Source: Lepidodermella squamata (lineage: Eukaryota > Animalia > Gastrotricha). Taken from it: a stretch of DNA of 64,000 nt. Below, one piece after another: positions 24,304 through 50,993 of this stretch. The position numbers and the translations under genes are program-made. Every line of letters begins with the position of its first letter. The first letter of the stretch is position 1. The DNA is taken from NCBI GenBank assembly GCA_047495785.1, contig JBLDXI010000015.1, positions 1,860,001 through 1,924,000 on the forward strand, in the 5' to 3' direction. The notes under the pieces were generated by a model that was given only the letters and a program-made list of their open reading frames with translations, searched no databases and was not told where the DNA came from.

Positions 24304-25099
24304 ATGCAGTGTCAGAGCAAGTTACCGATCGTAAAATTGCTCATCGCTGCCAAGGTTGTTTTCGTCCTGTATTTGTTGCTAAAACACTGGCTAAATGGCG
24401 CAGATACACCAGTTCCAGTCGATTGGCTGCACGAATTGGAGAAACAACGCGGGGGTCTGAAAGTGTATTACTCCACTAAGGCGCCACTCACGCCGGAAGA
24501 TAAGTGCAAAAGCGTTAAAGGCCGGCGCATTCTAGCCAATTATGATACGAGTTTCTCGAATCAACGCCGCAATTGCCTCAACTCGATGGCTATCAGCGGC
24601 ATAGACGCTTGTTTGGTATTTTCGGCGAACATTTTCGACGAAACATTCCGCCGCCAGCAGCTGGAATCCGATAAATATATCGACTGGAATCGCTTGGGCA
24701 AGCCTTATATAATCTTCAAAATTCTCAACCTGATGAACGAAGACGATTCACTGCTTTATTTTGACGTTGATAAATTTTTGGATAAAAATGTTGAAAAAAT
24801 AGTTTGTAAACAGGTAAAACTTTTTTTCAAAAATTAATTTTGAAATTTCAATTTTAAAATTTTTTCAGGCTGAATCATTCGGAGATATCATTATTTTATA
24901 CGACACTTCAAATGATCAGAAAATTTATGGCAAAAGAATTTTGTTGCGAAAATCGTTTCATTCTGTTAGATTTATATCTGAGTGGTTGATGTTGTCGCAG
25001 GATTTTCCACCTGATTTCAAAACCGAGCAAGATACGCTAAATTATCTCGTTGCGCGCTGGAACGTGACACTGCTACGAGACAGCGATTTATTTATGTGA
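24304..25099 (+). CDS. Type II membrane glycosyltransferase-like (GT-A) protein, 2 exons (24304-24812, 24869-25099)
   Basis: N-terminal TM, GKPYII...LNLMNEDDSLLYFDVD (DxD), RKSFHSVRFISEWL, EQDTLN. Confidence 0.6.
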
Positions 25100-25609
25100 T
25101 TTTTTGCTGTTTTCTTATATCAAATAGTCTTTCAAAGATGATGTGAGCAAAAATAAAAATAGCGATTTTCTGGAGCTTTTCCAATTCTAGTATATTGTTG
25201 CTAGTTAGGTCTCTAATGCCTTGTTCAAGCGCTGGAAAAATCAATTGTTATTTGTACGCGAATTCTGAGCGCATAGCATTTTTACCTCACAAGCTTTTGT
25301 AAAAACGTAAATAAAAAAGATCCAGAGCCATGGAGAATGCGGTTGAGGTATCAATTATTCATTCCGCACTGTGACCATTTCATCGACCAGCACTTAGATG
25401 ACTCGCTACAAGGAAGCCACTTTATGAAAAAATTCATGTGAAAAAATGCGGCGAAGACTACTTGGCTTTTTTTCATCGCCAGAGTACCTAACATGAAAGT
25501 ACTGGAGCACGTAGATTCCAGCACCCTTTCTGAGTGGCTTCTCACATGCTGACCCTACACGAATGCAGTAAATGTGTTAAACCAGCATATCTACTACGTT
25601 TCCTTTTAA

Positions 25610-26905
25610 ATGCGAACCTTCAATGTTCAACAATTGTCTTTCGCCTTTTGCGTTTTCGTCATGGTCTACATTACGCTGTTTGTCATTCTGTTCCCCTTGG
25701 ACCAACGATATCTCCGAAAAGCCTTCAAACAAATGACTGATTTCTTCTCAGATCGCGCGAAAGAACTAAGCTTGGAAGACCGGATATTCCAAGCAACGCT
25801 GGCCGAAGCAGATTGCAACCGGCCTGATTCCGCTCATTTCTTGCTGGCACAAGGTGATAATTGCTCAAGTATCGTTAAGCGGGAAGATAATATCGAAATG
25901 ACAAGGGGAAACTGGAGCAGCTCACTAGACTTCAGACGAGTCGTCTTAATAGTGTCTTTCAACAGGCCGCATTTCGAAGCTTTACCTAAACTTTACCGGA
26001 TGTACCATAACCTATTCTTGAAGGTCGTATATTGCGTCACAGGGCTTGCGAAGCTTTCCGAGTACAAAAACGGAACATTCCTACCCTTAGTTAATGAATC
26101 GATTGTAGAGTTTATGGCGGAACCAAGCGAGCCGACTGGTGAATCATTCTACAAATGCTTCCCCGTTGTTATGGATAAATTGCCCGAGGTTCAGCGAATG
26201 GTTGAGCGAAATGAAACCGACGGCTTCTTGCACGTCTCTGACGATATGATCCCAAACCTTTGGGGTTTCAAATCTGGGGATTACGATTTGTCCAAGTGCT
26301 GGCTTATGGGGCCACCACAGGCTCTGTACGACTTTGACAATCGGCGATTTTGCAACGGGGCAACTTGGAATAATTCTATTGATTGCACAAGCACTGAACC
26401 ATGGGGTGTCCTCTTTCAGTATCAACGTCAATTGGTTTCAGCATTCGACGAGGCTAATTCCACTCAGCCAGAATTTATCAATGATCTAGCAAATGCAAGC
26501 ACAGGTAATGCGCGTGACTTGGCTTCAGTTTTAACGCTTTAATTTTCAGGCTTCAGAAGAGTTTGGAATGTATACGCTGACCTTTTTTACGTATCCCGGC
26601 AGTATCTGTTAAAAACCGTAGAAATATTTCGGCTATTCGCAAAACACCGCATATACATGGAACTGGCTGTTGGCACAGTGTTTAAGGGAGTCGTTAAAGA
26701 CGAAGACATACAATACGTGTCTCGCTCCGGGCAAATCAGCGGTGATGGTCGGTATATGAAGGTAACTGATACGTACAGTTCATCTCACTTGGCATATCAT
26801 CCTTTGAAACTGGGATCTATCGACACTGCAACAATTGATAGACAATGCATCTACTGCTTAATGACGACTGCTTTCGATCGTTTAAGAAATCGAACTTTAA
26901 CGTGA
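25610..26905 (+). CDS. STELLO/DUF288-like putative glycosyltransferase, copy 1 (intron about 26504-26549)
   Basis: Type II TM; VLIVSFN.PH, DGFLHVSDDMIPNLW, YADLFYV, YMELAVGT, YHPLK. Confidence 0.75.
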
Positions 26906-27124
26906 GATTTTATTCATAAATTCCTCCACACAAGCCATGCTGTGATTTTTTGATGTATTCTATGCAATATTGATTAGTAAAATATATGTTTTTTTGCCAA
27001 CGGCTGGGTGCTAGTCTCCACATTAAGGTGTGAAGATGAGTGTCTCGTCACTGTGGCACAACTGGGAAGAAATCCCTTACAACAAATTTGTTAAATTTAT
27101 CTCTATATCGGATTAATATAACTC

Positions 27125-30100
27125 ATGTCTCTTGTATCGCACCGAACTCCGCGTGCACATGCAGGCAAACTCACAAACAGAGGATCCTCTGTTCGCTTAT
27201 CAGGAAAGAAGTTTTTAGATGACCCAGCATCGAAAGCAGCTAAAGCGAATAAGAGCCCACGTGCGAAATTTGCGCCTGAAAAAGAGGTGATAGAAGAAAT
27301 AGCCGCGATCATTGCAAACAACAAACGAAGAGAATTCATCATTTTTACGAATCGCTACCATGCTCTCGAACTGTTCACAATCTTACGGGCACCGATCGAC
27401 ATGCCGGCGCATCTCATCGAGCTGCTTCCAAAGGATGAAAGCCAAAACGATGAGAAGCAGATTAACTCGCCCCGAGAGAAAGTTCCATGGTGGAGTTCGT
27501 TTCACGCCATGGCGTTTTATGACAGGTATACATCCCATCTTTCAAATTTAGATTATATCGATTTCCCATTAGGCTGGAAATGATGACAGTGCCCATAATT
27601 GAACGGTTACTTTTGCGATACCTATCCGTTCAAAGCGCTGATCAACTTGACGCTTTAAGCGATGCTTTCATGAGGCTGCCTTTAAACTACGCCATCGAGC
27701 GGGGTCATATTGGCGCAAGCCGCTGGCTTTGTCGCTGTTCGATTTCCCTTGACGAGAGGACCAATCAGCCCAGCTCAAAGGTTGCTATCAGCACAAAGGA
27801 TGCATTTGGCCTTGCGCCGCTACATTACGCCGTAAAAACAGGCAGCAAGCATACTGCTAAAGATTTAGTGGATGTTTTGGTTTCTCATGGAGCTGATGTA
27901 AATGTTAAGGATGGTGGGGGTTATACCCCTCTTGCCCTCGCCGCTTGCCGAGGTGCAGTTGAGGCCGTCGATATCCTGCTAAAAGGTGAAGCGAAGCTGG
28001 ATCTAGCTACGAACGATGGTAAGTTTCGGACCCAATAAAAGCTAGAAATGTAGGTATTGTTCCTCAGGTTGGACGCCTTTAATCCTGGCGGCTTACCATG
28101 GTCACGCGAAGGTCGTTAATCATTTGATGAAGCTGAGCGTTTCCCTAGAATCCCAAGCTTGTTGGGCAACTATTGACGGCGCAACTGCTTTGATGGTTGC
28201 GGCTCAGAATGGACATACAGACATAGTAACAGCATTGTTGGGGACACAGGGCGGTATAGCCTCGCTGAATATTAGAGACTCTAGCGGTAGGACGCCACTT
28301 CACACGGCTGCTTTCAAAGGCTTCGACGCAATCGTCGATCTTTTGTTGAGCCATCGAGCTGATACGAGTATCGCTGATATCTGGGGTGCCACTGCGCTGA
28401 TGTTGGGGGTAGCTGGGGCGAAGCCCGATAAAGTTGTGGCTAAATTTATGGCTTATGGTGTTCAGTTAGATGCAGCGAACGATGACGGATGGACAGCTTT
28501 GATGATCGCAGCTGACCGAGGCCTGATTGATACCACAAGATACTTGGTCACCGCCTGTCAGAAAACTTCAATTTACACCCAAGCGTTAAATTCTCAATTG
28601 AAGGATGGCTCAACGGCGTTGATGATTGCCGCGGCAACGGGCAATGATAAAGTGGTTGACGAACTGCTTACGTCGACACACACCCTTGTTGAGCCATCGA
28701 GATCAATCGATGATTGGTCGGCTTTGTACCATGCGATTTACAGCCAGTCGTTGAAATCCACTCGTTCTATTGTCAGCCGTTTGCCGACATACAACTTGAC
28801 GTCAGAACTGGAGTTGACCCCTCGTCTTCAAGAAGTCAATCGATCAACAAAGGTCGAGGGCACCACGCCTCTGATACTAGCTTCGATGTTAGGGAATATC
28901 GTAATTGTAAGTTGTTCTTGGTTCAAATTAAATAGCAGGGTTCGATGACTTATTTACTTCAGGTCAGGGCTTTGCTTGATTTCGGGGCTCAAGTCAATTC
29001 ATACGACAACACGATGTTTACTCCACTCATGGCAGCTGTTCAAAACGACAACGAACCCCTGGCCAAAATTTTACTCTCGAAGGGGGCTAAGCCAGATTTA
29101 CAAGTTTGCATCCAATTTTAATGAGATGACTTGGTAATTTTCCAAAAAAATTAGGAAATCAATGGATACACTGCCCTTGCTATTGCCGCATTTTATGGAA
29201 ATACGAAAATGTGCGAATTTCTCGTGAACTTTGGCCGATCCAATGTAATGAAACTTCAACAATCTTTGCCACGTTATTGCTGATATTTTTATATAGCCTT
29301 TTATCTGGCAGGCCAATGGCCGAACTCCACTTTTGCTAGCCGCTGAGAAAGGTTTCCACGAAATCGTCCGGCTGATAATTCGAAAGTACCCTGCTGCTTT
29401 TGAGTCAGTCGACGTCTTGGGCCGCAACGCTCTTCACTATGCCGTAATTTCAGGGGACGAGAAAACTGTTCTTGCTCTCTGCGAAAACGCAAATTCTGCC
29501 AATTTCCTGAATCCTAATTTGAAAGATAAGTACGGGGAAACTCCGTTGATGATGGCTGCCAAATCTAAGGGGGGCGATAGTTACAATCCATCACCGCCTT
29601 CTACAATGTCGCCTCGCACCCCAGCTGTCAACCCCGATATTGCTTATGTAATGCCGATCTTGCGGCTAAAATCCCTCATCGTCGACGACACGGATAAGAA
29701 GGGTGATACAGCTCTGATTCGCGTGAGTTTTCATGAGCCATTCATATTCGAAAGACGTTTTTGTCCTCAGTCTTACTTAGCTAAAAACTGGGCTTTCGCT
29801 GAGGTAGCGTTGAAAAAGGGAGCCTCGGCGGCTCTTCATCGTAACACTCATCCAAAAATGACCCCTCTGATGCTAGCTGCGTCAGCCGGTCACGTGCAGG
29901 GTGTTAAGCTGATAAAATGGTACGCACCTTCGACCATCGACGACGTCGACGTTCTGGGAAGAACCGCCCTGTTTCATGCTGCAATGAAAGGTTAACTTCA
30001 CCCGCATGATGGATATTCAACTAATTCTGTATATTGAATCAGATAATTTAGAAATAATCAATCTATTGCTCGAAGGGCCTGAATCCGCTAAGGTGGATGC

Positions 30101-31144
30101 GCCAGCTACAGGCAGGCTAGAGGATGGTGAAAATGCCGGTGAAGATTGCGTACCTGGAACGACGGCTCTGCATTACGTGGCGTCTTATGGAAAAATGGAG
30201 ACTGCCAATCGGCTCATTTCAGCAGGTTAGAGTTTTTCATATTCGATAAAAAGTTATAGATCAGGGATATTTTTGCTATCAGGAGCCGATATAAATCACG
30301 CAAACGATTTGGGAGAGACAGCGTTGATGCTGGCAGCCAAATACAGCAATTGGACAGTTTTCGATGGCCTCCTTAAAAAAGGAGCTGACGTTCATTTTAG
30401 AGATGAAACCGGTCGAACGGTTTTGCATCGTCTCGCATGCAGTGAAGACCAGTTCGAAGCGTGCAGGGGACTCCGGCTATTTGTAAAGCATAAAGGCGCA
30501 GAACTCCTCGACTCAATGGTCGATACCCTACATCAGAATACAGCTTTACACATCGCAGCGTTGAATGATAGCTCTAAAATTGTGGACGAACTAATCATTC
30601 TTGGCGCATCTCGAGAGTCTAAGAACAACGGAGACCTCACACCGTTGGAGTCGATAACCTACGGGCCGAAATTGTTTAATGACCTTGGGCAGATTATAGA
30701 CGAGAAATGGCAAACTGTTGCGGATGTCATGCTGAGACGTGCCCTTAAAAATAAGTATACTGGTACAAGCTATGTTGATATTTTAGGAAGGCTTTACGAC
30801 GAGGAGGTTGCGAAAATTCGGGAAGAGGATTCTACAGTAAGGAAACCCAATAATTCTTCAAGCTTATTCATAAATCTTTCTTCCTAATGCAGAGAAAGAG
30901 TGCAGCGATGTTGATGCAACGAATCTTTGAGCTCGATGACCTTCCGTTTTTCGACATTGATGCCCTGGCTGAAGTTTTTGAAAAAATCAAAGCTGAAGAT
31001 GGCCTGAAACTTCCTGCTAGCTTCAAGCGTTTGGTCGAAACAACCAGGGGCCGGTTTGTCGTTTTTAATCCTGATACAATCAGCAACATCACAAAAGAGA
31101 GAAGCGGAGTAAATCTACGTGGAAACAAAGCAAAACGCGTCTAA
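27125..31144 (+). CDS. Multi-exon ankyrin-repeat protein (about 20 repeats)
   Basis: Repeated G.TPLH/ALM.AA..G...V..LL motifs across ORFs 27580-30887 linked by 45-60 nt GT-AG introns. Confidence 0.85.
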
Positions 31145-31214: not shown

Positions 31215-34200
31215 TCACCACAGTAGAACCCAAAAGAATATTGCTACCGCCAGCAAAGCAACTAACATGGCCGAAGTCAACATTTTCATTGTAGGACTTT
31301 CGTTGATGCCTTCGGAAATTGGGGCAAGGTACATGCTATCGACACTGGAAGCCTTTTTCGCGGAAAGTTGTACATCGGCATCAAAAACATTGTCGGATGG
31401 TCGCACGTCGCCGTTAGAGCCTTGGCGCCCATTGTTGAGGGAATCAATGCCACATCTTTTAAAACAAAAGAATTCAAACAAAAAGTGGAGATTTCGGTCA
31501 GTACTAATGATTACAGCCAATTTATCGCACGACGAAATTTAGATTGAGGCTGGTCATTTGTCAGGCCCACATTGTCAGAGTCCCGCATTCTGCTGCTTTC
31601 GACTTCGCTAGTTCTTGAGTTACGCCCATCAACTCCACTCCCTCTCTCTGAAATATGGGTTCTGGAATAACGGTCAAATGAAGGATTGCTAGCTGTTTAC
31701 TTCTGATGCTTTCCGATTCATTCACAGTGCTGTTTCTTCGCTTCGATTTTGTTCGCTTCAATATTCTGTGCTCGAATCGTGTCCAGTAGGTTAATGCGTT
31801 GATCTTAAATATCAATTAATGATTCCGATAGTTAGTTTGAAGTAAAACATGGTATTTCTCTTACCCGAATTTTATCTGGTGGTTTCGTAACAAGAGATAA
31901 GCAAATTGTGACCAGGGTGGTTATCGAAAACAAGATTATCGCAAAGTACAGGTAATGTACATTCCTAAATTAGAATTTATTCTGATGGACCCTAGCAGAA
32001 GATGATGTACTTACTTCAGTGCCGGAGGTCGGAAGTCATGCCTGTTCACTTTTCCCGCTGCACAGCTAGGTTCTGGATAGCTCACATCCAACCCAAAGCG
32101 CACAACCCCAATCTATTTGAGATATTGAAATACCTTGAAGGAATATAAAATATAAGTCTCATACCAGGAGACCTATCATCAGGCCATAGAAAGCTCCCTA
32201 GAAGGACAAAAACTGTCTATTATTCTGCGTAAATTTCGAATTTCTTGCCTGTTCATTGCAGCGTTTCCAGAAAATAGCCAAAAGAAAGATTGCCGTGATA
32301 GGTGGAGAAAAATACGCTGTCATCTGGAAATAAATGTAAACACTAATGACACAATTAGAGAAGAATGACGCACTGATTGAATGTATTTGTACAAGTTGGA
32401 AGCATTTGCCACGATAACCATCCTAAAATAGATACAATTTCGTCGCAGACAAGCGAATCTTCGTTGAAGTTTACCAAAGCATGCTGACTGTACAAACGAT
32501 AACAATAAAGACCCGGCCAACAATTTGAAGCTCTTTCGAGGATGCTTTCGGTCTTATCAGGCGCCAGATATCCATGGTGAAAATAGCGGAACAAGCGTTG
32601 AAAATCGCCTGAAAGGAGTAAAGTTTTAACCAAAAAGCAGCTTCGTAATAGAGAAAATCACAGTGAAGGAGGATATCAATGCTGCAGTGACTGTAATGCT
32701 TAGAAGACCTTGAGCTCCCTTGTCCAGCAGTTTAGTTTCAGGATCAGTGTCCTTTGACAACATCGTGTAGGCATAATTCGTGCAACCCGTTTCACTTCTG
32801 CAGTAGCAGCAGCACAGCAGTGGATCAGCGCAGTTAATGAAATCTGATATGAAGTGCCTTTTAAACCCAAAATTCGCAACAGAAAACTCTCACCTTTGTA
32901 TAACACCCTGGAAGCCATTCCAGGTAAAACGAATAAGAACGGTGGTAGAAATTTGAGAGCTGCGGCTAGTAGGACGCCAAGCTTTGCATGGGACAAGTTT
33001 TGGCTCGCCAGCACGTGTTGCGTAATCATTTGATCGCCACACCAATACCACAGCGACAGAATCGATATTCCGAAAATAGCCCCAGGCCAAGGCTGATAGG
33101 CGTCATCCGGTGGCTGCATGAAATGGAAGGCGAGTTGTGCACTGGGCGGTTGGCTGCATCTGTAGTAGAAAAGGTAGAAAATTCGAAAATGATCGAAGTG
33201 TATTACTCAAATATGGCCTCGCGAGCATCCGCTTGTCTGCTGGTTGATTGCCCACACCTGAATTTCAGAATCTTAATTTTCTTACTGAACTGAAAGGCAA
33301 TTCTGATATATACGTAGTATCCGAGGTTTCGACGACGAAATGTGCTGAATTGTTCGCTGTGCTTGGTTTTGAATCCATGTACAGCTTGAACAAGTTTTCG
33401 ATTCCACCCGTTCTAGCCATCACTTGGATTGAACAGAAAAGCCTAAATTATGGATTTTTAAGTTTCAACGAAGTGCCCTAACCTTGAGCCAAGAGATAGC
33501 TTGCCCCAACAAGAATGACCACCAACTGTAATCGCAGTTCAAATGCAAAGGTAAGATTAGAGACAATAACCAAACCTGCGTTGCATTGGTCCATAGGACT
33601 GCTGTCATTCCGCCTGTTTTTATCAAGATTTTGCAATTTGGTCAATATATCTTTAGCATGAAGCTAACCTAAAATTGTGAAAAATGCTGCCACGGACAGT
33701 AGCAAAAAGACTCCGATGTATCTATTGAATCCAAGCTGACAGGGATCATAATTATTCGCAAATTCAATTCAAAGATTTCTTTTTCTCACCACTTGCTCCA
33801 GGAAAAAGGTTCCAGCGTAAAGATCAGCCTGTTACATGAAGGATGAATAACGAGAAAACGTTGATTCAGCACTAATACCGATATTTTCGTAAAGATGTAG
33901 AGGAACAGAGCAAGACAAGACATGTAAATCTGGATTCGGCGTCCACCGAAGCGTGCCCTCAAGTATTCCGGCATGGTTGATACGTTTGAAGCAAGGTAAA
34001 CCGGCGTGAAGAACCATCCAAGCAGCGGGAGAATGAAAATTGCCTATATTAATGGTATTCAGCTTACATTCGATAGTCAATTCAAACAACGAACGTTAAT
34101 CTCGAAAACTGCGTCTCCAATTCCGTAAGCAGCAGAGGACCCGGCTATGCCTAGAAAATGCGTACTGCCAATATTTGATGCAAAGAGACTCATGCCAATC

Positions 34201-34577
34201 TGTTGAACTGGTTCAAACACAGAGAACAAAGGCATGTTAGAGATCTTACCATAACCCAGTTTGCTGAGCGAGCTGTCAGAAAAAACCCGGAGAGCGATCC
34301 TCGGTTTTGAAATGCAGCCTAGATAAGAAAACAGTTGAGCTCCAGCCATTTCGAGCAGCGGCAAGCTTACTATTATTCCGACGCAAATAATTACGACGAA
34401 GTAAAAAGCAAAAACAACCCAATCTTGCACGGGGACGTTATCAATAAGATTCGGCTCTCCAAGTGCTTTGGTTTTATTGTCGGCGTACATATCACAAATA
34501 GATTGACGATCTTGCGAATTAGTAGTATCGCAAGCCATCGCGATGGCTTCGACATTAAGCTTAGCGCAACCAGGCAT
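31215..34577 (-). CDS. Sodium/glucose cotransporter (SLC5/SGLT family), many short introns
   Basis: [65 protein letters not shown]-terminal TM ending FFWVLLW. Confidence 0.9.
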
Positions 34578-34684
34578 TTTCAACGAAAAATACTTGCTTG
34601 AAAAAAATCGAATGATATCGAATGAAAAAAACCATATGCCCAATTATTGCTTGCTTCGTTTTATTTCGATAAAAAAGGTGATTA

Positions 34685-36100
34685 TCAAGCTCCGAAAGGA
34701 GGAGGTAGCGCGAAACTCGGCGCAATGTTATCAGCGACAGGTGCGTTCCTAGTTTGGTAATGAGTCTCCCATGTGCAGTCGTCGTTGTAACTCAGTAGCA
34801 GCTGGTGCGTGGGTTGACGGAAAGGTGCATACAGCGAGAAGGTTGAAGCCAGTTCGCCAAAGCCACTCTGCGTTATTAAGAGCGTGTTCATCCTCGTGAG
34901 GAACAGCCATTCAGCCAGGGTTTCTGCAAAGCGATCTCGCCTTGTTTCATCATCGTATTCACTCCAATCATTATCAATGCTGATAGGCTACAGAAATACA
35001 GTTTTTGAATTTTGGATTAACATTGAACTGTATGATTACCTTGAAACCAGATTCATGTGCGTCTATTCTAGCCTTCCGTAAAATACTAATGAGATGTGTT
35101 TTTGCCTCAACAGAATCTGATGCAATAAAGACGACAGGATTTTTTCCTTTTTCACAATAGCCCGCCACGTAATTGATTCTCCGATGGAAGCATTGTTCAA
35201 CTTGATATCGAGACGCTCTCGTCCAATCTTCCTGCCTTAAACTGAAGCCTTGAGGTGCAACTCTCAAATGAATTCCTATGCGACAGCCTTCGTAACCTTC
35301 GTAGCCCATACGGCGCCTAAGCCCCGCCAATTTTTCAGTTATTAGTTTGGCTGGTTTGCTCAAAAGAACTCTCAACGCGGTGTAGATGACGAGGTCGTAG
35401 GAAAATCTCAGCTTATGTTTAGCGATGATGGTCATGAATTCGACTATGTTTTGCTGGAAAAGAAGTTGAGGAAGAATGTTTTGCAGAATTGTTAAATCTT
35501 TCGTATAGACTGAGATTATCGCAGGATCCATTGAATGAAAATCGTTTGAGGTGGGATAGCGTATTCTGGGTACATTCTCGGCCGAATTTAGCAGGAATTC
35601 GTGATAAGCCTTATTTTCGGGCAGGATATTCTCGAAATATTCGTTAAGATCCCAAGGTAATGTCCAGTTGACTAGGAGCACTCGATTTGAAGAAATTGCA
35701 ACGAAAAACAGTGAACTAAGCCCTGCGACGAATACAAGTAATTCAACATGAAACAAGTTACTGAAGAGGTACCTCGCAACCGATCTGCCAACCCTCCGTA
35801 GCTGATATTAGGATCGGATATTTGAAAAACTAGGGCTCTTACGGGGCATCTTGCTGACATTTGGCACAGCATCATCATGTCCATCTTAGAGATGTAAAAT
35901 TGCTGAAACTCCTCAATATATTTGATCGCCTCCAGTTGAGTCTCCGATGGCTTCGGCATTTCAGGCTGCTCAGTATGACTAAGATCAATGAATTGTCCGG
36001 CATTTAGACGGGCTTTTATCCGGAATAGTAAAATTATCAAGAGGGTAAACCAAAGGGTCACAATTGAGACTTTTAGGAGCTTTAAAACAAATTTATTCAT
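34685..36100 (-). CDS. Fucosyltransferase-like (GT-B; GT37/GT23/GT11-type motifs) type II protein, 3 exons, copy 1
   Basis: GGLADRLRG...SNRVLLVNW, IGIHLR, VFIASDS, AEWLFLTRMNTLLITQSGFG. Confidence 0.72.
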
Positions 36101-37981: not shown

Positions 37982-38128
37982 TGAAACCTCGTCCGAGTAA
38001 ATTATGCATGCTGCTTGTATCATATACATGCAACATGCAACGGACCAACAAACAAAGTTTTGAAAGCCGGTACATTGAGTAAAGTTGTAACAAAAGTAGC
38101 ATCAAGGGACGGCTCAATTTTATTCAAA

Positions 38129-39472: not shown

Positions 39473-40034
39473 TCACATGATGAGATAAAAAACTCCAATT
39501 GTTTGTTTTACTTTCCCTACTTACCCCCATAGCTTACTCAGCTGATTCGCAGAGGCGTTACATGTCGCGAAGTGTAATCCTTGTGAATTGAGTTTACTCA
39601 GTGACTGGACCGGAACCAAGTACCTGAATAGTATCATAACATCAATAATATCTCATTAATAAGTCACAGGAGATAAATAATCTTATTTATACACACCCAC
39701 GATAAAAAGATTGTCTCACGAAGACCGATGAACAGCAAGGTCGCAACATCATAGTCAACCGCAAAATAAATTGAAATGATAAACTGGACAGTTTGCTCAT
39801 TCCATCAATTGTTAAACGTAGCCAGGTGAAGGGGAAAATATGATCAGTATCGGTATAATTCTCATCGGCTTTCTGGTCTGCTGTCAAAGAAACTTTCAAA
39901 TTAAGCTTTATTATGTAAGCATCGCTCAACTTATTGGGAAAGAACCTGCAAGCAAACAATTGCTCTGGAATAAAAATAGCCATGAAGAGCAGATATTAGG
40001 ATTCAATCAATTCACTGCGGCTTTAAATAAGAAG

Positions 40035-41350
40035 TTAAATTGAATAGCGCTCTCGCCATGATTTCAGCCATCCGTTTTCTGACTGGGTTTCACCTTCTTC
40101 ATCCTTTATTTCAGCCTCTTCTTCTACGGCGTCCTTATAAGTCTGAACGTCCGGGTCCTCAATATCGCCAACTTGCATTGCCTCTTCATTTGAAGGCTCG
40201 CTGGGGTTGTCACCCGTTGAGTCTTCATAGAATTGTTGATGTTGTTGCGGTTCCTCAGGTTGTCGCGGTTCGGCAGGTTGCTGGGGCTCCTCAGGTTGCT
40301 GGGGTTCCGCAATTTGTTGAGGTTCTGCCGGTTGCTGGGGTTCTGCAGGTTGCTGAGATTCTGAGATTTCTGGATTGCTGGGTGCTTCTTGCGGCTGTTG
40401 TGGTTCGGCGGGCGATTCACCAGTTGAACCGCCATCTGATCCAGCATCGCCCCCGTTATTCTGAGCAGATTTCTGCCGCTCTGCCTCCTCCTTTAATCTC
40501 CTTTCCTCTTCCTTCTTTTTCTTCTTTTGCTCCTGCTTCTTCTTCTTCTCCTCCTGCTTTTTCTTCTTTTCCTCAGTTTTCTTCTTCTTTTGCTCCTCCT
40601 TCTTCTTTTTCCTTTCTTCCGCTTTCTTCTTCCGGTCTGTGGCCTGCTTTTTCTTCGCCTGATCCTTCTTCTTTTTACCTTCCGCCTTCGTTTTCCTTCG
40701 ATCAGCATTGTTATTCTTTTTCTTATCCTTGCTCTTTGTAGGTTTCTTCCGATCTGGCTTTTTATCCTTCCTCTGCCCCTTCGGTCCTTTGCCCTTGTTC
40801 GGTCGAGCCACTTTGCCAGGTCCCTTCGGTCCTTTACCCTTGTTTGGTCTTGCCACCTTGCCAGTTCCTTTCGGTCCTTTAACTTTGTTCGGCCTTGCCA
40901 CCTTGCCAGGTCCCTTCGGTCCTTTACCCTTGTTTGGTCGAGTCACATTGCCAGGTCCTTTCGGCCTTTTACCAGTGTTCGGTCGTGTCACCTTGCCAGC
41001 TCCCTTTGATCCACCTCGGCTAACTCCGGTAGATGGCCGCTTGGTTTTAGAAGGTCCACGATTAACCGTCGGTCGTGATGCCATTGATGCAGATGGCCTT
41101 GACATTCTCGGAGCAGTAGAGCGTCCAGCCCCGGAACTTCCCCTGCCAATAGCCCTTCGTTTTTCGATCGTTAGCAATGCTGGAAGATCAGAGTTTGCGT
41201 CACTTACATCCTCACTGATTTCAGCGACCTCTGCCTGAGCCAGTGCAACACTGGCAAAGCCTGGTCACAAAAGCAAAGGAGATATAATGAGAAAAGAAAA
41301 GCAGCCTAACACTAACCTAAGAAAACTCCAATCAAAAGATAAATCCTCAT
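40035..41350 (-). CDS. Secreted prepro-protein 1 (exons 41317-41350, 40035-41260; about 419 aa): Lys/Arg/Gly/Pro repeats, Lys/Glu coil, acidic EPQQP tail
   Basis: Spliced N-terminus MRIYLLIGVFLG|FASVALAQ, acidic spacer, EKRR; 5x15-aa GKVARPNKGKGPKGP repeat. Confidence 0.8.
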
Positions 41351-41380
41351 GTTTGGGAAAATGCACTGTTTTGTAACAAG

Positions 41381-41388: not shown

Positions 41389-41863
41389 AGCGCTTTTGCT
41401 GCGTGCTTTTCCTGTTAATGCAGGCCTGCTTGATCTCACGATACACATCGTGTGGCTCCTGAGAGCCTGGCATGTTTCTCATTCTCGAAACCCCCAATAC
41501 CAGCTGTTTAATTTCTCACGCAAAATGTTCAAAGATCGAATCATGGACTCGAAATTTGTCGAACTGCCGATTGTGCGAGAAAAGAGCAAGCGAAATAAGA
41601 GCAATGATATCAAAGCAATGTGATGATAAGAGCAGCGAAAAAGGGCAGAACGACATACGAACAATTTAAGAGCAATTCAAGAGTAATTGTTGTATTTCTA
41701 TGGAAATAGTATTGTCTTTATTAGTCTTCCGCATCGCAAGCTCGTGCTGCATAAAAGTAACTGATTGCATTAAAAAGACATCATCATTCATCAAAGAAGC
41801 ATATAGGTTCCAGGTTCCCACATTACATATTAATGTTCACGTCAGGATACAAAGTTCGTGGGC

Positions 41864-43528
41864 TTACTCAAGAGAGTTAGCTTCATTAGAATGGGTCACT
41901 TCAGATTTGGCTGGTCCAGATTGCGTAATAGCTTCCTGACGAGTATCAAAGAAAGTTTGGTCTTCTTCCGTCTCTTGCTCATAGTCCGAGGAGCTATAAT
42001 CGTTCGAGCCTTTTGGTTCGGCTCCGATCCGATCGAATCCTTCCATTGCATCAGTAGCTTTGTTTCCATACCTGGTCACGCTGTTCACAGCTTTGTTCGA
42101 CATCCGATCGATACCCGAACTGATAGGTCTCATTGTGCGATTAACGACTTTCGCCAATTTAGACGAGTAACGATCAATATTTCTGTTCAACCCATTCGTT
42201 ATAAGATTTGCTCCAGTTTTGGCCGCTCGATTGATGCCGTATTCGATATCATCAGCTAGCTTATTTGCATGTCGATCGACTCCGTTCGCCAAATTATCCA
42301 AGCTGGCACCAAACTTGCTACTGACTCTGTCGATCTGTCTGTCGTACTCAGATTTCATCCGACGGGCACCGCCTTTGACTTTTCCGATCTGTTGCTTAAT
42401 GGGCTTGGCAATTTCGTTGTAGCCAGTCTCTAGATGGTCAGCAACACTGCTGATTGGATCGATTACTTTTTTCGCGGCTTTTACTCCTTTGTTCACTGCT
42501 TTCAAAGGCTTTTCCACCGATTGTTTTAATCTGCCTATTGTTTTCGAGACTTTCTTTCCCGCTTTTGCAGCTTTTGCGGCAGTTTTCGAAGTTTTGCCGA
42601 TATCAGCTGCGGTTTTTGCCATCTTCGCTACCCTAGGAATAGCCGCAGCAACGCCGATAGCAGGATTAGCAAATGATGCCGCAATGGTCATCAGCGGCTC
42701 GGCATACTTGTAAACAGGTTTCAACACTTTCTCGTAGGTTGGTTTGAGCACTTTGTTATACGTTGGTTTCAGTACTTTGTCGTACGTCGGCCTGACTACT
42801 TTACGATAAACCGAATTCCCAAACTTCTTGAAGCCCTGGCCAACTTTCGACATGGCCTTCTTGAATTTGCTCGGCCCTTTTCGCTGCGGCCTTCCACCTT
42901 TCTTTGGCCTGGGTTTCGTCGCCGAGTAACGGTTTTTGTTTTTCTTAGGAACGGCCGGTGACTTTTTCCTCAACTTTTTAGGTGGTCTCTTGCTTGGAGT
43001 TTTGCGCCTAGAGGAGTTTGATTTGTTAGCATTCTTTCGAGCTGTCTTCTTCGAGAATTTTCTCGGCTTGCCTTTTGATTTTTTCGCTTTTACTTCCTTG
43101 CTTTTTCTCGATTTTCTCGATCTCGAATTGGCGGAGCGGTTGTTAGGTTTCTTGACTGATTTCTTTGGCTGTGTCCTCCGATTCGGCTGTTTGACTCGTG
43201 ATCGACGTGCACCTTTCTCTGTTTTTCTGGCTTGCTTTTTAGTGGATGGTTTAGGCTTCCTTGCTGATCGAGTTTTTGTCTTAGGCTTCTTGTACGAATT
43301 ACGAGCGACGGCTTTTGCAGGCTTTTTCTTGGCGCCCCTCTTTTCGATTTCAATCGAATCCGTGACCTCGGGCACAAACATGTTTGAGGCGCCATTGTTA
43401 TCGAGCTGCAGCTGTTCCGCTGATGCCACAAAAGCGAACCCTGGAACCAAAACAAATGAACCTCGTTATGGATGATATGAATAGGCTTTACCGATTGTCA
43501 GAATCGCAGCAATTACGAGTTTCCCCAT
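41864..43528 (-). CDS. Secreted prepro-protein 2 (exons 43492-43528, 41864-43440; about 537 aa): very basic domain, LKPTYxKV repeats, amphipathic helical region, acidic tail
   Basis: MGKLVIAAILTIG|FAFVASAE, acidic spacer, EKR; intron at the same position and phase as protein 1. Confidence 0.8.
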
Positions 43529-43791: not shown

Positions 43792-45062
43792 TCATTTTTT
43801 ATTGCGAATTCTGTCGAAAATGTCAACCAGTTGGCAATATAGACACTGCCTATCAGCAGTGGCCACCTCAACTTTGCCAAGCTTCAACGGGTGATAAATG
43901 TAGTTGTGAGCTTTGTAAGTCTTATTTACAGGTAAATGCCGATCAAAATATACACTGCCATCTTTACTAATAAACTGCAGTCGTGTAACTGGCTTTGTTA
44001 CGCCTTTCAAAATGGTACCAACAGCTAACTCCATGTAAACTTCACGCCTGGCAAATAGCGTGAATATTTGATTTGCAGCAGTCAAATCTTCTGCGGTTAC
44101 GAAAAACAAATCAGCGTATACATTCCATATCCTCCCAAAACCTTAAGAATGGAAGTATAAGAGAAAATGGATGAGATGTGGGAGAAATAATTACGCTTAA
44201 TACCTGAGCTAGCTAACGCTAGATTTTTCGCAAAACCAGGGTACAAGGATTCCGTATCGTTTAAAGTACTAAGAATATTTTCTTGGTAAATGTCCAGCAC
44301 GTCCCACTTTTCGGTGGTTGAACAATCGGCGATGTTATCCCACCGTTTGCCGAGGCAGGTCTTTTTCCTAGCCACATCTATTATAGATTGCGGCGGACCA
44401 AGAAGCCAATTCTTTCGAACATCTAGTATCTTTGTATTGAACTTCCATAAATTTGGTATCAAATCCTCAGATATATGAAGAAAACCATCCGTATCTTTAT
44501 TCTCGACGACTTTCCGTAAATAATCGAGACGATCATAAGCTTTTGGTAAGCATTCGTAGAATACCGCTCCGGTTGGATATGTCGGCTCTTCGGTTAATTC
44601 TATGATAGAGATGTTGACCAACGGCAGCCATTTCCCGCTATTGTAATGCTCCAACTTTTGCAAACCAGTAATGCAAAGCACCACGTGAAGGAAGATACCT
44701 TGGTAAAGCCGGAAAATTTTAGGAATCGCCTCGAAATGAGGATTATTGAAAGACACAATGAGAACTATCCTCTTAAAATCTACGAGATTGTCAAGATTTG
44801 CCGAATGGAATATGCCCAAGTTTCTCCTGGTAATAAACTGGGAGCAAGCATCGCCTTTCGCTAGTTTGTAATAAGAAGCGTTGTTACAGTTTGCGATAGG
44901 ATCATTCATCAGGAAGTTCTGCTCTGAGTCGGCTTCATAAGATCCGTTTCTTCTGTAATGAAGCTTTGAGTAGACGAATAGAAGCAACCCTGACGCCAAT
45001 AACATAATTTTTAGCAATAGATAGATTAAGTAAATGACGCTTTTAAATTCTGGGCATTTCAT
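43792..45062 (-). CDS. STELLO/DUF288-like putative glycosyltransferase, copy 3
   Basis: VLIVSFNNPHFEAI, DGFLHISEDLIPNLW, YMELAVGT, YHPLK. Confidence 0.75.
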
Positions 45063-45512
45063 TTTAAAAATAGCATAGATATCTTATACGCAGCATCATA
45101 AAGCCGTCAGTAGACTTCATAGGAATGCGGCTTGAAATCAAGCTGAAAGTTAAGGAGGCCAATCCCTATGCACCGTACACTATTGAGTTGTACTCTTGCC
45201 GTGGATTGCGATACATAAGTCCATACTACTATGGACTGTATGAGAATAGGAATGTCACGAATTTCTAAGCATGAAGCATCGACATTCCTGTTACCTGGAA
45301 AAGATCACCTGATAGGCAAATAGTTATGCCGAATTCGATTCAAGTGCTGCATATTTTTTATTATTCGGACTCAATATAGATTATAGATTAAATCGCATTT
45401 TAAGGGAAATGAACAGATCCTAGATTATATAGATATAGCACATCACCTTTCACAGCGGCAAAAGTCGAAAATATGATTTAAGAGGCGGAAATGTATATTT
45501 CCTCCAAGTCTT

Positions 45513-47412
45513 TCAGTTGCAGTAGACATTCAGGAAAGTGTTGTCCTCAGCTAGGTCACACAGCTTTTCCAAGTCACCATTATTAAGGTGGATATCATTT
45601 TCGTCATGCTGAGCAGTTTTATCTTGTTGTTTGGTGTCAGACGTCGGAGCCGGACGGCTGGAGTCAGTGATAGAGATTTGGCTGCTGGTGACAAACTGGT
45701 CTTTGGTTACTGGAGCAGCTGTTGTTTCAATATTGTTTACTGACGACATGGGGATGGCTGTGGTCTCAATGCTGACACTTTCAGTGGGAACATTGACCGA
45801 GGGCGAAATAGCTTTCTCAGAATCTGAAATTCCATTGGGTGATGCACTAGCTATTTCAGGTGTGCTTTCAAGATCCTCAGCCTCTGAGCTGTTTTGGTCA
45901 TTGACGGCGCTGACTTCTTGGGGATTATCCTGTTCTGCTTCGGAACCTATGTCATCAGGGAAGCTTTCGATAGGCCTTATATCAATGGCTCCAATAGAGC
46001 CTGCGTCGCTTTGTCCCAGATCAGGTTTAGGTTGTCTCCCTGACCCCTTGACTTTGTCTCGAATTTTCTTGTCTTTCTTACCTTTCTTCCCTTCCGAAGG
46101 CCTCTTTGTCGGCTTCCCTGGCATTTTCCCGCCAGCTGGCAGCTTCTTGTGTGGTTTCTTTCCGAACTTGATATCCTTAGTGACTGGCTTAGCTTTCGGC
46201 TTCTTCCCCAATTTGATGTCCTTTGTTATCGGCTTAGTTATCGGCGTCTTTCCAAATTTGATGTCCTTTGTAATTGGCTTACTTATTGGCTTCTTCCCAA
46301 ACTTGATGTCCTTCGTGATTGGCTTAGTCATATGTTTCTTCCCAAACTTAATGTCCTTCGTGATTGGCTTAGACGAAGCCTGATTAAGCCCGTGGGACAC
46401 CTTTCTGATGCTTCTATCGATCGGTGCTGTGATTTTGGAAATTCCATGCGAAACTTGAGTAGCAGCCTTTGTTAATTGGCCATCCACATTCGCTGCAACT
46501 CGATTGATTTCATTTGAAACCTTCCCAATTTGATTGTTAACTGGCTCCAAAACTTTGCCAACGCCTTGCCGAATGTGGCCGGTCGCCTTATTGATTCCAT
46601 TCTCAACACCTGTTTTCACATGGTTGATTCCATTGTTTATTTTGTCAATTTGTCGATTCACGGGCTCGATTATCTTGTTGACTTGTTGATTGATTGGTGC
46701 AACAATCTTATTCACGCCACTATGGATTTGGTTTGTCACCTTATTGATGGGAGCCATGACTTTGTTTACCCCAGTGTTGACCATGTTGTTTATGTGATTG
46801 ATGGGTTTGCTGATGACTTGATTAACGGTGTTGAGCCCTTTGCTGACGGCGTTGATTGGCGCTGCAACGGCTTTACTGACATGGCTCACGGAATTAGCGA
46901 CTTGCCCAACACTTCCCGCGAGAGCACCAATCGATCCAGCCATCGGAATTACGGCTGAGACCAATCCGTTTCCGGTGACTTTATTCACGGTCGAGATGAC
47001 ACCTTTGACAGGTGACGGTAGTGCGTTCATAGCTTTGCCGACTACCTTGTTGATCGGATTGTTTGGAATCTTGCTCAAAGCAAAAGCGCCGAGTGAGACT
47101 GGATTTGAAACCACTGCTGCAGCCATAGCCACAGGGGCAGCAACCTTCGAAACTGCTTTCACAGCACCACCGACAGCCTTTCCAACATCTTTGACTGTTT
47201 TCTTGAACGAAAAACGACGTTTGTCGACCTGATCTTCTTGAAGCGATGATTCAGGTTGGAATCGTTCGAATTCGTACTCATTTTCGGCAAATTGCTCCTG
47301 GGCAGTGGCGACGTAGACAAGACCTTTTTGGAAAGAGATTTATAGTGACAACCTTGTCATCTATCAGTAAGACCTTACCCACAGCGACGAAAATCAAAAT
47401 ATTAGTTCTCAT
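45513..47412 (-). CDS. Secreted prepro-protein 3 (exons 47379-47412, 45513-47323; about 614 aa): amphipathic region, 5x15-aa KPITKDIKFGKK repeat, acidic Ser/Thr tail
   Basis: MRTNILIFVAVG|LVYVATAQ, acidic spacer, DKRR then FSFKKTVKDVGKAVGGAVKAVSKV; same phase-1 intron. Confidence 0.8.
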
Positions 47413-47621
47413 TATTTTCGTAATGTGAGAATGATCTGTGACTTGAGTGGAAAGGTCTACGCCTTAAAAGCCGTGACAGCGAAAGGGTCGACACATTTTT
47501 CATTTCTCACGGTGATTTCCTGCAGCCGAGAAACACGACCCAAGTTTCCCACCGAAAATCACAGCTGCTGCTTTAATTCCTAGGAATAGCGGCAAATGTA
47601 AAAGGTCTCACGGCCAAGTCT

Positions 47622-48972
47622 TTATATTTTTATTTTGGAACTACGGATTCTATCAAACACGTCTACAAGCGCACAATACAAACACTGCCTGTCGGCGGAA
47701 TCAGTTTGCACCTTGCCGAGTTTCAGAGGGTGGTAAATATAGTATTCGGCACTATAGGTTTCAGTCACTTTTTGAGACCGTGGCGATCCCCAAAGCTGCC
47801 CGGCTCGATGGATGTATTGCAGGCGGTCGCTTGGCAAAGTAACAGCCTTCATGATACTACCAACTGCCAACTCCATGTACACATTATGCTTAGCGAATAA
47901 CGTGAACATTTTGTTTGTTTCTAACAAATCCTGAACGGATACGTAGAAAAGATCAGCGTAAATGTTTGAAACCCGCCGGTAACCTGTTTTCAAAACGTTT
48001 TAAAGGTCATAGTTGACTTTATTGCAGTTCAAACATACCAGAGCTTGCTACTGCAAGGGAGCGGGTGAAATTCGGATCAAGTACTGCTGATTCATTCAAT
48101 GCTTCTTGAATTTGAGCCTGATACTGGTCCAAAACATACCAATGTTCGGGAGTAGTGCAGTCGACTTTATTGTCCCAATTTTTACCCCTACAATGCATCT
48201 TCCTATCGACATCGTATAGCGTTTGAGGTGGGCCTAGGAGCCAGTTGTTCTGAGGATTGAGTTCTTTCCTCTTAAATTTCCACAAGTTCGGAATAAGGTC
48301 GTCGGATATATGCAGAAATCCATCAGTTTGGTTGTTTGTGACGTAGTGACGGACATCTTCAAACCTATCGTAAATTTTAGGAAGGCACTCGTAGAAAATA
48401 GCTCCCGTTGGTTCGGTTGGCGTTGGCGTCAGCTCGATGAAAGACACGTTAACTAGCGACAGAAGCTGGCCGTTTTTATAACCCGAAAGGTTACGCAGTC
48501 CCGTGATACAAAATAAAATGCGCAGGAATATCCCATTGTATAACCGGTAGACTTTAGCAATAGCCTCGAAATGCGGGTTATTCAGCGAGACGATGAGCAT
48601 TATTCTGTTGAAATCTACAAGATCATCAATCCGAGTTGAGTTGAATATTTCCAAGTCTTTCTTTTTAATGACTGATGAACAAGAACCTTGCTTTGCCAAC
48701 TTGAAATACAATGCATTAGCGCAGTCCGTTGTTTCATCGCTTAAAAGCAATTGCTTTTCCAGCGTCAAGTAGTAGGCCGTTTCATTTGTAGAATCATTTC
48801 CAAAACTCCGGCCAGCGTGTTGGAAAATGCCACTCCGCAAAGAGATTATGCTGCTATTCGAATCTGCCAATAGCTGAATAGTGAAAAATACTACTCCAAT
48901 GGCAAAAATTATAGCTATTATGACTATATCTGTCGCTTTGAAAGAATTACGATCAAACCATTGATGCGTCAT
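47622..48972 (-). CDS. STELLO/DUF288-like putative glycosyltransferase, copy 4
   Basis: MLIVSLNNPHFEAI, DGFLHISDDLIPNLW, YADLFYV, YMELAVG, YHPLK. Confidence 0.75.
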
Positions 48973-49619
48973 GGCCCAACACCGAATTAGGCAACATAAG
49001 TATAGCGAAAATTGTTAAGAAGCGAGATAAGCTTTATTTCTTAAAATAAAAATACTACGCTTTATTCAAGATATGCGTGAAGATAAGAAACTCCAGGAAG
49101 TATAAGCAATCTTAGGTGGCACCGAATGCAGAAACGCTTTTCCTCATGACTCATGACTGCATTCTTCTTCGGTTTTGTCGGAACCTTGGTTCATACGGTA
49201 AATCGTACAGGGAGCGTGTTTCTGTATAACGTAAAATCGAAGATTGCGTTCCTCATTTGTATCGGCTAAAAAATCTGAGCTGCGCAGCTGAAGAGTGCAA
49301 GAAAAAGTGACCATTCATAATAGGGAAATTCAATAATAAAAAATCCACCCTAAATTTCTCGCATCGTGTATTTTAGCCTCAATCATAGGATAATTTCATG
49401 TCCCCGTGATAAGCAGTAGGAAGGGAGAACACTCTGCGCCGGCTTCTTCTTCATCAAGAACTTCAAGGGCTATACCGGCCATATACCATAACATGTTCTA
49501 TAATGAACAATTTGTTCTTGCTTTGCGTGTTTGGCTATCATTAATTCTTACCCAAAACGAGATCATTAGTGAGTCTGCAACTACCTGTGGTCATTTCATT
49601 TTTTCTGCACTTCCTCGCT

Positions 49620-50993
49620 ATGAAAAACTCTAATGAACTAACTAATTTCATCGTTACTTTTTTCATTTTATTTGCTGCAGTAGCTTTGTCACTTTTTCTT
49701 TTTCACTACAACTTCAATGTCAGTATTATCGGCGAACGGGAGAAGAGCAGATTCGTAAATGATGATCTTATCAAAAAGCATGATAACCAGACCAAAATCA
49801 AACCAAAAACGCGAGCCCGGCAACAATACCCCTTCGAATTCTGCTCTAATCCTGACAGAAGTATTTTCGAGATAAAGCCTGAGTGCGGAAGAGCCTTAAC
49901 CCCAAGGAACATCCCACCAGCCTTCACGAAGGATCAACTTCTAGACTTTCGAAAAGTTGTTCTCATCGTTTCTTTCAACAATCCCCACTTTGAAGCGATA
50001 CCTAAAGTGAGGTCACTCTACCGAGGCATTTTCAAGAGAATCATCTACTGCGTCACAAATATTACTGCATTGAAACACTACCGCGATGGAAGCTACATGC
50101 GATTCGTTAACAGAACAATAATTGAATTCTCCCCGGAAGTCACGGAGCCAACTGGAGCGCTGTTCTATGCCTGCATACCCCTTGTTCTCGACTTACTGGC
50201 TGATATCAGAAGGATGGTGACCGGGAATCAAGTTGCAGGATTCCTTCACATTTCAGATGACCTGATACCCAATTTATGGTCCTTCACACCTAACAGGTTT
50301 TCGCTGAACTCAAACTGGCTCCCAGGGCCTATTCAGGAGGTTTACGATATCGACAACGCTAGGATTTGCGACGGCTACACCTCGAATAACTCGGTAGACT
50401 GCTTGCGTGAGACCAACTGGGATGTTATGCAGTCTTATCAACTGCAATTGATCGGGGCTTTTGACCAAATCGCTGCGACTTATCCTGACTTTGCCGAGAG
50501 TCTCACGCACGTCCCTTATGGCAAGTTTTAATGTGGCTCATCTATCTCTAACTTGGAAATTTTCTTTCCAGGTGGGCCCCGTCGAGTTTGGAATGTATAC
50601 GCTGATATCTTTTACATTACCCGTGAAGACTTGTTTGCCGCTGGTGAAATATTTCGCATCTTCGAGTCTCAAAAGGTATACATGGAGATGGTTGTTGGCA
50701 CAGTAGTTCAAGGCGTTTCCTACCATGCGGCACAGCGCAGAAACATTAGCTACGACGAACGCCTCCAATTTTTTGATAGATATGGTCAAATTTATGGTGG
50801 CGAAAGGGATCGAGCTTTGACAGACACTTATCGGCCGTACTACGCTTTTTATCATCCGTTGAAGATGGGACATATTGCGAACGCATCTACGGATCAACAA
50901 TGCTTGTACTGCATGATGCTGGGAAATTTTAAGAAGATCAGAAATTTCATGAACGCGAAACATCGTTCAAAACTTGGCTGGAAATTGATGTAA
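49620..50993 (+). CDS. STELLO/DUF288-like putative glycosyltransferase, copy 5 (inverted; intron about 50521-50571)
   Basis: VLIVSFNNPHFEAI, GFLHISDDLIPNLW, YADIFYI, YMEMVVGT, YHPLK. Confidence 0.75.

Follow-up and report, generated by a model that had tools for sequence, protein, structure and literature searches.

Gene content of the cluster

In a 64,000-nt stretch of the genome of the gastrotrich Lepidodermella squamata (NCBI GenBank assembly GCA_047495785.1, contig JBLDXI010000015.1, positions 1,860,001 to 1,924,000 of the forward strand; hereafter the window), genes for STELLO/DUF288-like membrane proteins lie among genes for fucosyltransferase-like (FUT-like) membrane proteins, a sugar transporter of the SLC5 family, and three secreted polycationic proteins (SP1, SP2 and SP3). 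Nine of these genes follow one another on the minus strand from 31.2 to 49.0 kb, in the order SLC5-FUT-FUT-STELLO-SP1-SP2-STELLO-SP3-STELLO, just as an earlier reading made by a model from the letters of the window (the sequence-only reading) had described. The STELLO-like, FUT-like, SLC5 and SP families are not homologous to one another, and all are found within 20 kb. Counted by families and not by genes, the region brings together four or five distinct secretory-pathway families. On balance, we believe that this neighbourhood is real and specific to the lineage, consists of secretory-pathway genes, and arose mostly by tandem duplication.

The genome is compact at this locus, with approximately one gene per 2 kb in the window, introns of approximately 47–56 nt with GT..AG boundaries, and a GC content of 39–47% across the cluster region (2-kb windows). 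The published L. squamata assembly comprises 122 Mb in 157 contigs, with a GC content of 43% (PMC11660948). All of our searches and fold predictions used single exons rather than joined, spliced proteins. Transcript evidence comes from RNA contigs of whole-animal, SMART-cDNA runs (2014–2015), which were placed, together with contigs of a 2024 DNA run, over 6,000 nt of the window; the depth of these contigs cannot rank expression levels.

The genes of the STELLO-like, FUT-like, SLC5 and SP families are as follows, in window positions:

25610-26905, plus strand: STELLO-like copy A; exon 1 from 25610 to approximately 26508, exon 2 at 26552-26902; identified by tblastn paralogy, alignments and a Pfam STELLO match (E 0.037)
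31215-34580, minus strand: SLC5 sodium:solute symporter of the SGLT type, split into numerous small exons; Pfam SSF score 38.9 bits (cut-off 22.8)
34685-36100, minus strand: FUT-like gene A; exons 36100-35774, 35723-35040 and approximately 34975-34688; motifs GGLADRLRG, IGIHLR, FIASDS and SGFGELAS
36553-38029, minus strand: FUT-like gene B; exons 38029-37241, 37193-36912 and approximately 36852-36556; identified by paralogy to FUT-like gene A
38129-39472, minus strand: STELLO-like copy B; exon 1 from 39472 to approximately 38535, an intron of approximately 47 nt, exon 2 at 38479-38132; identified by paralogy, with low-depth RNA contigs on its exons
39894-41354, minus strand: SP1 mRNA; exon 1 at 41350-41317 (signal-peptide codons 1-11), intron 41316-41261, exon 2 ending at 40035; from RNA contigs
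41864-43527, minus strand: SP2; intron 43491-43441 after the signal-peptide exon; from an RNA splice joint
43792-45062, minus strand: STELLO-like copy C; exon 2 at 44139-43795; its DD motif reads ED, and it is the sister of copy D in the tree
45513-47412, minus strand: SP3; signal-peptide exon at 47412-47379; gene model by analogy
47622-48972, minus strand: STELLO-like copy D; exon 2 at 47981-47625; identified by paralogy and alignments, and the copy used for folding
49569-50993, plus strand (opposite to copies B-D): STELLO-like copy E; exon 2 at 50577-50990; identified by paralogy and alignments

STELLO-like genes

A tblastn search of long open reading frames against the window, together with alignments, recovered five STELLO-like paralogs that are 36–58% identical and all intact. 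Each has two exons, with a phase-1 intron splitting a Gly codon between them, and each begins with a hydrophobic helix, as in type II topology. Assigning them to a family by single-exon Pfam score was unsuccessful: the exon-1 pieces scored 13.3–16.7 bits (E 0.003–0.04) and so did not reach the Pfam STELLO cut-off of 27.8 bits, with one copy giving no match, and a word-index protein search with exon 1 of copy D returned no matches. When 1.84 billion representative proteins were searched with a profile built from all five exon-1 sequences, however, 74 matches reached E≤1e-3, ten having an E below 1e-10, and PF03385 was present in 42 of the 53 matches that were scanned, with a best E of 4.8e-32. 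The sequence-only reading had counted five STELLO/DUF288-like genes. Its five intact paralogs are there, and it is the profile search, not the Pfam score, that places them in the family.

The AlphaFold2 model of copy D exon 1 (43-row alignment; predicted local distance difference test [pLDDT] score 79.6) shows a membrane helix at the N-terminus as well as an alpha/beta domain, and an ESM-Atlas shape search with this model placed a STELLO cluster first (template-modelling [TM] score 0.51), followed by GT-A families of the GT2 type (TM 0.26–0.43). Against the PDB, Foldseek gave no match at E≤0.001 and a VIA search gave UDP-sugar pyrophosphorylase as its best non-helix match (Z 5.2), the long N-terminal helix dominating both searches; the STELLO exon-1 profile found nothing meaningful among PDB sequences. 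In the alignment of 43 sequences, the aspartate pair of the HISDDLIPN motif is well kept, with D225 invariant and D224 conserved in at least 90%.

The closest known proteins are Arabidopsis STELLO1 and STELLO2 (PF03385, formerly DUF288), together with their uncharacterised relatives in other eukaryotes. The window copies resemble the Arabidopsis proteins in their type II topology, putative lumenal GT-A-like domain and conserved aspartate pairs, the pair in the window copies being a possible counterpart of DD205-206 of STL1. They differ in length (approximately 430 aa vs approximately 760 aa), in sitting in a separate clade with metagenome animal sequences, and in lacking any link here to cellulose synthase. 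In Arabidopsis STL1, complementation was abolished by substituting the conserved aspartates of the putative DXD sugar-nucleotide-binding motif (DD205-206AA and DVD297-299AVA), and distant relatives of STELLO occur in nematodes, fungi and molluscs (PMC4906169). Our literature search found no paper that gives an animal DUF288/STELLO-like protein a function. From these comparisons, copies A–E are best described as a divergent branch of the STELLO/DUF288 superfamily, with type II topology and a predicted GT-A-like domain in the lumen, and as probably active members of it.

Secreted polycationic proteins

SP1, SP2 and SP3 share one leader design, in which the signal peptide opens with 11 codons and a single further base before a phase-1 intron of 51–56 nt interrupts the codon for Gly-12. 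The remainder of the signal peptide comes next, followed by 25–28 acidic residues, which end in EKRR in SP1, EKR in SP2 and DKRR in SP3. Past this dibasic site come cationic blocks with a net charge of +12 to +19 per 40 residues, and an acidic tail ends each protein. What lies between differs from one protein to the next. SP1 has five Lys/Gly/Pro-rich 15-aa repeats of the GKGPKGPGKVARPNK type, a KKKKEE block, and an acidic tail made of PAEPQQ repeats. SP2 has a Lys/Arg/Ser/Pro-rich polycation of approximately 200 aa, amphipathic helical repeats, and its acidic tail. SP3 has amphipathic helical repeats, five 15-aa repeats of the KPITKDIKFGKK type, and an acidic, Ser/Thr-rich tail. N-glycosylation sequons are few (one in SP1, four in SP2, one in SP3), and only SP3 has a tail rich in Ser/Thr/Pro. 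The three secreted polycationic prepro-proteins of the sequence-only reading, with their signal peptides, propeptides and lysine-rich regions, are thus present as described.

SP1 and SP2 are spliced, polyadenylated mRNAs. RNA contigs from two runs, complete with SMART adaptors and poly(A), define the SP1 intron (41316-41261), 5' end (41354) and poly(A) site (39894), and the SP2 intron is seen as a splice joint. The SP1 5' end lies 31 nt past a TATAAAA box, and TATA-like elements occupy the same position in SP2 and SP3. RNA contigs are deep on SP1 and SP2 and sparse and fragmentary on STELLO-like copy B, depth here being no measure of expression.

Three further observations concern these genes. 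The stretch 41400-41800, which separates the SP1 promoter from the 3' end of SP2, is covered 5–10 times as deeply as its surroundings by the DNA run, with loose contig ends at 41579-41610, and probably represents a dispersed repeat or a transposon fragment. In SP3 (47240-47150), the first residues after KRR, i.e., the predicted mature N-terminus, form a Lys/Ala/Val/Gly-rich amphipathic stretch similar to linear cationic antimicrobial peptides. We also considered the SPs as prepro-proteins of the cnidarian nematocyst type and dropped this reading because the genome is spiralian.

Origin of the interleaved gene order

The alternation of STELLO-like and SP genes is the most striking part of the gene order, and it appears to have a simple origin. 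In a maximum-likelihood tree of STELLO-like proteins (quick method), the five window copies and two metagenome proteins form a clade with a support of 99. Within it, copies C and D pair as sisters (support 86), and copy B joins that pair with a support of 97. SP2 and SP3 are likewise related to each other, matching over approximately 220 aa of amphipathic helical repeats (BLASTP E 3e-18), and SP1 shares only the leader with either of them. SP3 comes 212 nt past copy D, and SP2 comes 267 nt past copy C. Since C and D are sister paralogs and each has one of two homologous SP genes downstream, the sequences indicate that a two-gene STELLO+SP unit was duplicated, giving D+SP3 and C+SP2.

It follows that the interleaving represents one ancestral adjacency, not three. 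The same reasoning applies to the cluster as a whole: five STELLO-like genes, two FUT-like genes, and SP2 with SP3 are duplicates, so the number of independent co-location events is far smaller than the number of genes.

FUT-like genes

The two FUT-like paralogs are 25–39% identical (tblastn), have three exons each, and are type II membrane proteins. Both contain, in order, the motifs GGLADRLRG, IGIH(I/L)R, F-I-(A/S)-S-D-S and SGFGE(L/M)AS. Judged by their order and with PMC8439653 as a guide, these may correspond to motifs I-III of the superfamily that holds the alpha-2, alpha-6 and O-fucosyltransferases. Language-model features (Atlas) agree with this: for FUT-like gene B exon 1 the neighbouring clusters are those of XG_FTase, O-FucT and FUT8 (0.92; 171 features shared), and for FUT-like gene A exon 2 the sole named family is FUT8_N_cat (0.91). 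A word-index protein search with exon 1 of gene B was blank.

The closest known systems would be the GT-B fucosyltransferases (GT11, GT23/FUT8/NodZ, GT37 and the O-FucT families GT65/68). Type II topology is common to both, and the window genes carry, one after another, a Gly-rich loop, an HxR motif, a strand with SD and an SGFG..A motif near the C-terminus, which may match those of the superfamily; the FUT-like genes differ from it in having no hidden Markov model (HMM) match and no structure-sequence match at any threshold. The sequence-only reading had called them fucosyltransferase-like. Two paralogous type II membrane proteins are indeed present, and HMM and PDB sequence searches did not confirm the name. 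Judging by motif order and language-model features, we consider it fairly likely that they belong to the GT-B fucosyltransferase superfamily. Even so, fucose would not be implied as the sugar transferred, since the superfamily includes enzymes that transfer others.

Transporters and mucins

The claim of an SGLT-type transporter holds up well: in addition to the Pfam SSF match, the best PDB relatives of one 139-aa SLC5 exon are SGLT1 (E 4e-23) and SGLT2 (E 4e-19), with no other SLC5 subgroup listed. The gene lies very close to its upstream neighbour, with only approximately 110 nt (34576-34690) separating the FUT-like gene A stop from the SLC5 start codon. This gap contains AATAAA and then a lone tttttttcag acceptor approximately 20 nt before the ATG. 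It resembles a spliced-leader operon junction, and the two genes may be co-transcribed.

The sequence-only reading also placed two GDP-fucose transporters and two mucins near the cluster. The following candidates are present:

189-659: small sialomucin-like, Ser/Thr-rich membrane protein
2606-3667: intronless gene similar to nucleotide-sugar transporters of the TPT family, one of two paralogs
8382-9461: intronless gene similar to nucleotide-sugar transporters of the TPT family, the second paralog

Two TPT-family nucleotide-sugar-transporter-like genes are therefore where transporters were expected (2.6–3.7 and 8.4–9.5 kb). They may resemble SLC35C1, and GDP-fucose would be a putative substrate. 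At E≤1e-20, a word-index search with the SLC35C-like transporter returned a single protein, from a metagenome and 46% identical, so the paralogs are unusually divergent. They lie 22–29 kb away, with unrelated genes in between. The sialomucin-like protein accounts for one of the two mucins, and the second was not identified.

Other genes in and around the cluster

Two more genes lie in the region:

24304-25099, plus strand: 'GT-A-like' gene for a small type II membrane protein of approximately 246 aa; two exons with a 55-nt intron at 24814-24868; from an open reading frame and splice reading
27125-30887, plus strand: multi-exon ankyrin-repeat protein gene; Pfam Ank_2 and Ank, E 1e-34 to 1e-15

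The first of these carries YFDVD and EQDTLN motifs, and a DxD-type motif is plausible. The GT-A-like label that the sequence-only reading gave it was not confirmed: there is no Pfam (E≤10), NCBIfam or PDB sequence match. The second encodes a large cytosolic protein with no tie to glycosylation, and at 27.1–30.9 kb it splits STELLO-like copy A from the remaining cluster.

Ordinary genes make up the outer flanks: ITPA, NELF-like, class-C GPCR-like and receptor tyrosine kinase genes. The ITPA (inosine triphosphatase) genes are three paralogs in tandem on the minus strand (3996-6145). Directly past STELLO-like copy E, eight tRNA genes (Met, Val, Ala, Ser, Arg, Thr, Val, Ala) are packed into 1.7 kb (51140-52850); the order Val-Ala occurs twice among them, which suggests a small internal duplication.

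Gene order in relatives

For comparison we used animal contigs of up to 207 kb from the ENA metagenomes ERZ23486787, ERZ23486764, ERZ27333047 and ERZ25069853. They provided seven loci (L001–L007), of which L006 and L007 repeat L001 and L002; tblastn was used on L001–L005 and called-gene tables on L006 and L007. These loci have a GC content of approximately 36–38%, and their STELLO-like genes are approximately 30% identical to the window copies, so that orthology is uncertain. By tblastn, each of L001–L005 has one STELLO-like gene with the same two-exon layout as in the window; none of its neighbours, over distances of up to 10 kb, is FUT-like or SP-like, the STELLO-like genes compared being possibly not orthologs. 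The neighbours are instead Med7, a mitochondrial carrier, G-protein-coupled receptors (GPCRs), CLCA and trypsin, and the gene tables of L006 and L007 show the same. Synteny in relatives was a check that the sequence-only reading had proposed, and the outcome is negative: the cluster is not conserved in the five loci examined by tblastn. JGI metagenome contigs were also scanned, once with FUT exon 3 and once with STELLO exon 2, and neither scan yielded a relative. Apart from the question of synteny, the metagenome contigs come from one or more compact-genome animals related to the window organism and are a potential comparison genome.

Interpretation

Our preferred reading, in which tandem duplication accounts for most of a secretory-pathway neighbourhood particular to this lineage, leads to the following proposal for how the products might work. 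SP1–SP3 would enter the regulated secretory pathway of a secretory cell and be cut at the dibasic (E/D)KR(R) site by a protease of the prohormone-convertase type. They would then be released as abundant, charged extracellular material, most likely a glue or coat whose cohesion comes from charge. In the Golgi, the STELLO-like and FUT-like proteins would act as enzymes of the same broad secretory programme. Functional coupling between the genes of the cluster is a plausible hypothesis. We think it distinctly unlikely that the STELLO-like or FUT-like enzymes act on SP1–SP3 themselves, and a single fucosylated product made jointly by the cluster enzymes and SP1–SP3 is possible but unsupported.

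Several points weigh against this reading. Two unrelated glycosyltransferase-like families and a sugar transporter stand beside the STELLO/SP array, which is more than simple duplication explains, and selection for co-location is possible. The FUT-like genes gave no Pfam match at E≤10 and no NCBIfam match, their exon profiles gave no PDB sequence match, and the AlphaFold2 model of FUT-like gene A exon 2 (3-row alignment) had a pLDDT of 48, too poor for a fold search. Finally, glue or coat is the leading guess for the role of SP1–SP3, drawn by analogy, and the secretory cell type is likewise a guess; host defence is the main alternative role.

The analogy is with flatworm glue. Gastrotrichs, like flatworms, have duo-gland adhesive organs. 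Like the Macrostomum lignano glue proteins Mlig-ap1 and Mlig-ap2, SP1–SP3 are secreted proteins with an extreme content of Lys/Arg and with Ser/Pro/Asn interspersed among the charged residues; the likeness is one of composition only, and it extends to the Lys/Arg/Ser/Pro/Asn-rich block of SP2 and the KR regions of Mlig-ap1. They are unlike them in being approximately ten times smaller, in lacking lectin, vWD and EGF domains, and in having acidic tails and helical repeats. Mlig-ap1 contains KR regions with the repeat peptide SRKPRRKNRKSRKP, Mlig-ap2 is glycosylated, and in M. lignano charge interactions with sugars govern attachment and release (PMC6410801).

A stronger version of the coupling was favoured by the sequence-only reading. 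The cluster would be a co-regulated gland module in which SLC5 imports sugar, the FUT-like and STELLO-like proteins build a fucosylated glycan or glycoprotein using GDP-fucose from the nearby SLC35C-type transporters, and SP1–SP3 are carriers or partners of that glycan. Four non-homologous families related to secretion or glycosylation, side by side and on one strand, are what such a module would look like, as is the operon-like gap of approximately 110 nt between FUT-like gene A and SLC5, and the Ser/Thr/Pro-rich tail of SP3 could bear O-glycans. However, no Pfam, NCBIfam or PDB match makes the FUT-like genes fucosyltransferases, and the TPT-family transporters are 22–29 kb distant, beyond unrelated genes. 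The interleaving reduces to a single duplicated adjacency, and the cluster is absent around the STELLO-like genes of the closest relatives. Nor do the upstream regions of the SP, STELLO and FUT genes have any k-mers in common. The SP genes have their own TATA boxes, and their deep RNA contigs are unlike the sparse ones of STELLO-like copy B; taken together, these two facts neither show nor exclude co-regulation. We consider a module of this kind unlikely.

At the other extreme, unrelated and fast-evolving tandem families may simply adjoin in a gene-dense genome without any shared biology. Genes are dense here (approximately one per 2 kb), duplicates make the clustering look greater than it is, the region has within it or at its edge an ankyrin-repeat gene of unrelated function and a group of tRNA genes, and the relatives lack synteny. 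Pure coincidence nonetheless sits poorly with two observations. Every family except the ankyrin-repeat gene is membrane-bound or secreted and belongs to the secretory pathway, and the STELLO+SP pair stayed intact through duplication and long divergence (58% identity between the enzymes, 25% between the SPs). This explanation, too, seems to us improbable.

We rate as quite unlikely the possibility that SP1–SP3 are host-defence or antimicrobial precursors, in which an anionic propiece and tail neutralise the cationic helices until secretion, and for which the glyco-enzyme neighbours would be incidental. Each SP does have the corresponding design (a prepro-protein with a dibasic site, cationic amphipathic helices and an acidic tail), the SP3 stretch after KRR has the likeness to linear antimicrobial peptides mentioned above, and Pfam gave only weak, apolipoprotein-like helical-repeat matches. 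At 400–600 aa with long internal repeats, though, the SPs are far larger than typical antimicrobial precursors, and the spacing of internal dibasic sites gives no sign that many peptides are released. The Lys/Arg/Ser/Pro composition of SP2 is, moreover, like that of the KR regions of Mlig-ap1 (PMC6410801).

The most specific proposal makes a STELLO-like enzyme and its downstream SP an enzyme-substrate cassette, copied whole to give D+SP3 and C+SP2. The enzyme would glycosylate the neighbouring SP and the FUT-like enzymes would extend the glycan, yielding a gastrotrich glue or coat based on both charge and sugar; we regard this as very unlikely. A single operon for the whole cluster can be rejected, given the mapped SP1 5' end 31 nt past its TATA box and the TATA-like elements of SP2 and SP3.

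Significance

Mixed clusters of glycosyltransferase genes have been noted in Caenorhabditis elegans, and the L. squamata locus is similar in that unrelated Golgi enzyme families are adjacent on one strand of a compact genome. It differs in that abundant secreted proteins, which are not enzymes, are interleaved with the enzymes, and in that an enzyme and a secreted protein were duplicated together. The locus thus belongs with the mixed glycosyltransferase clusters of compact animal genomes, with the co-duplicated pair of enzyme and secreted protein as its twist.

To our knowledge, the adhesive and coat materials of gastrotrichs are molecularly uncharacterised. If the enzymes and the charged SPs of this cluster act together, the locus would be a compact entry point both to the function of animal DUF288 proteins and to those materials. 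If the cassette reading were true, it would provide the first function for an animal DUF288 protein and a rare animal cluster of enzymes with their protein substrates. If there is no joint action, the locus would instead show cleanly that, where animal genes are densely packed, duplication of a pair of genes can give the look of a 'biosynthetic cluster'.

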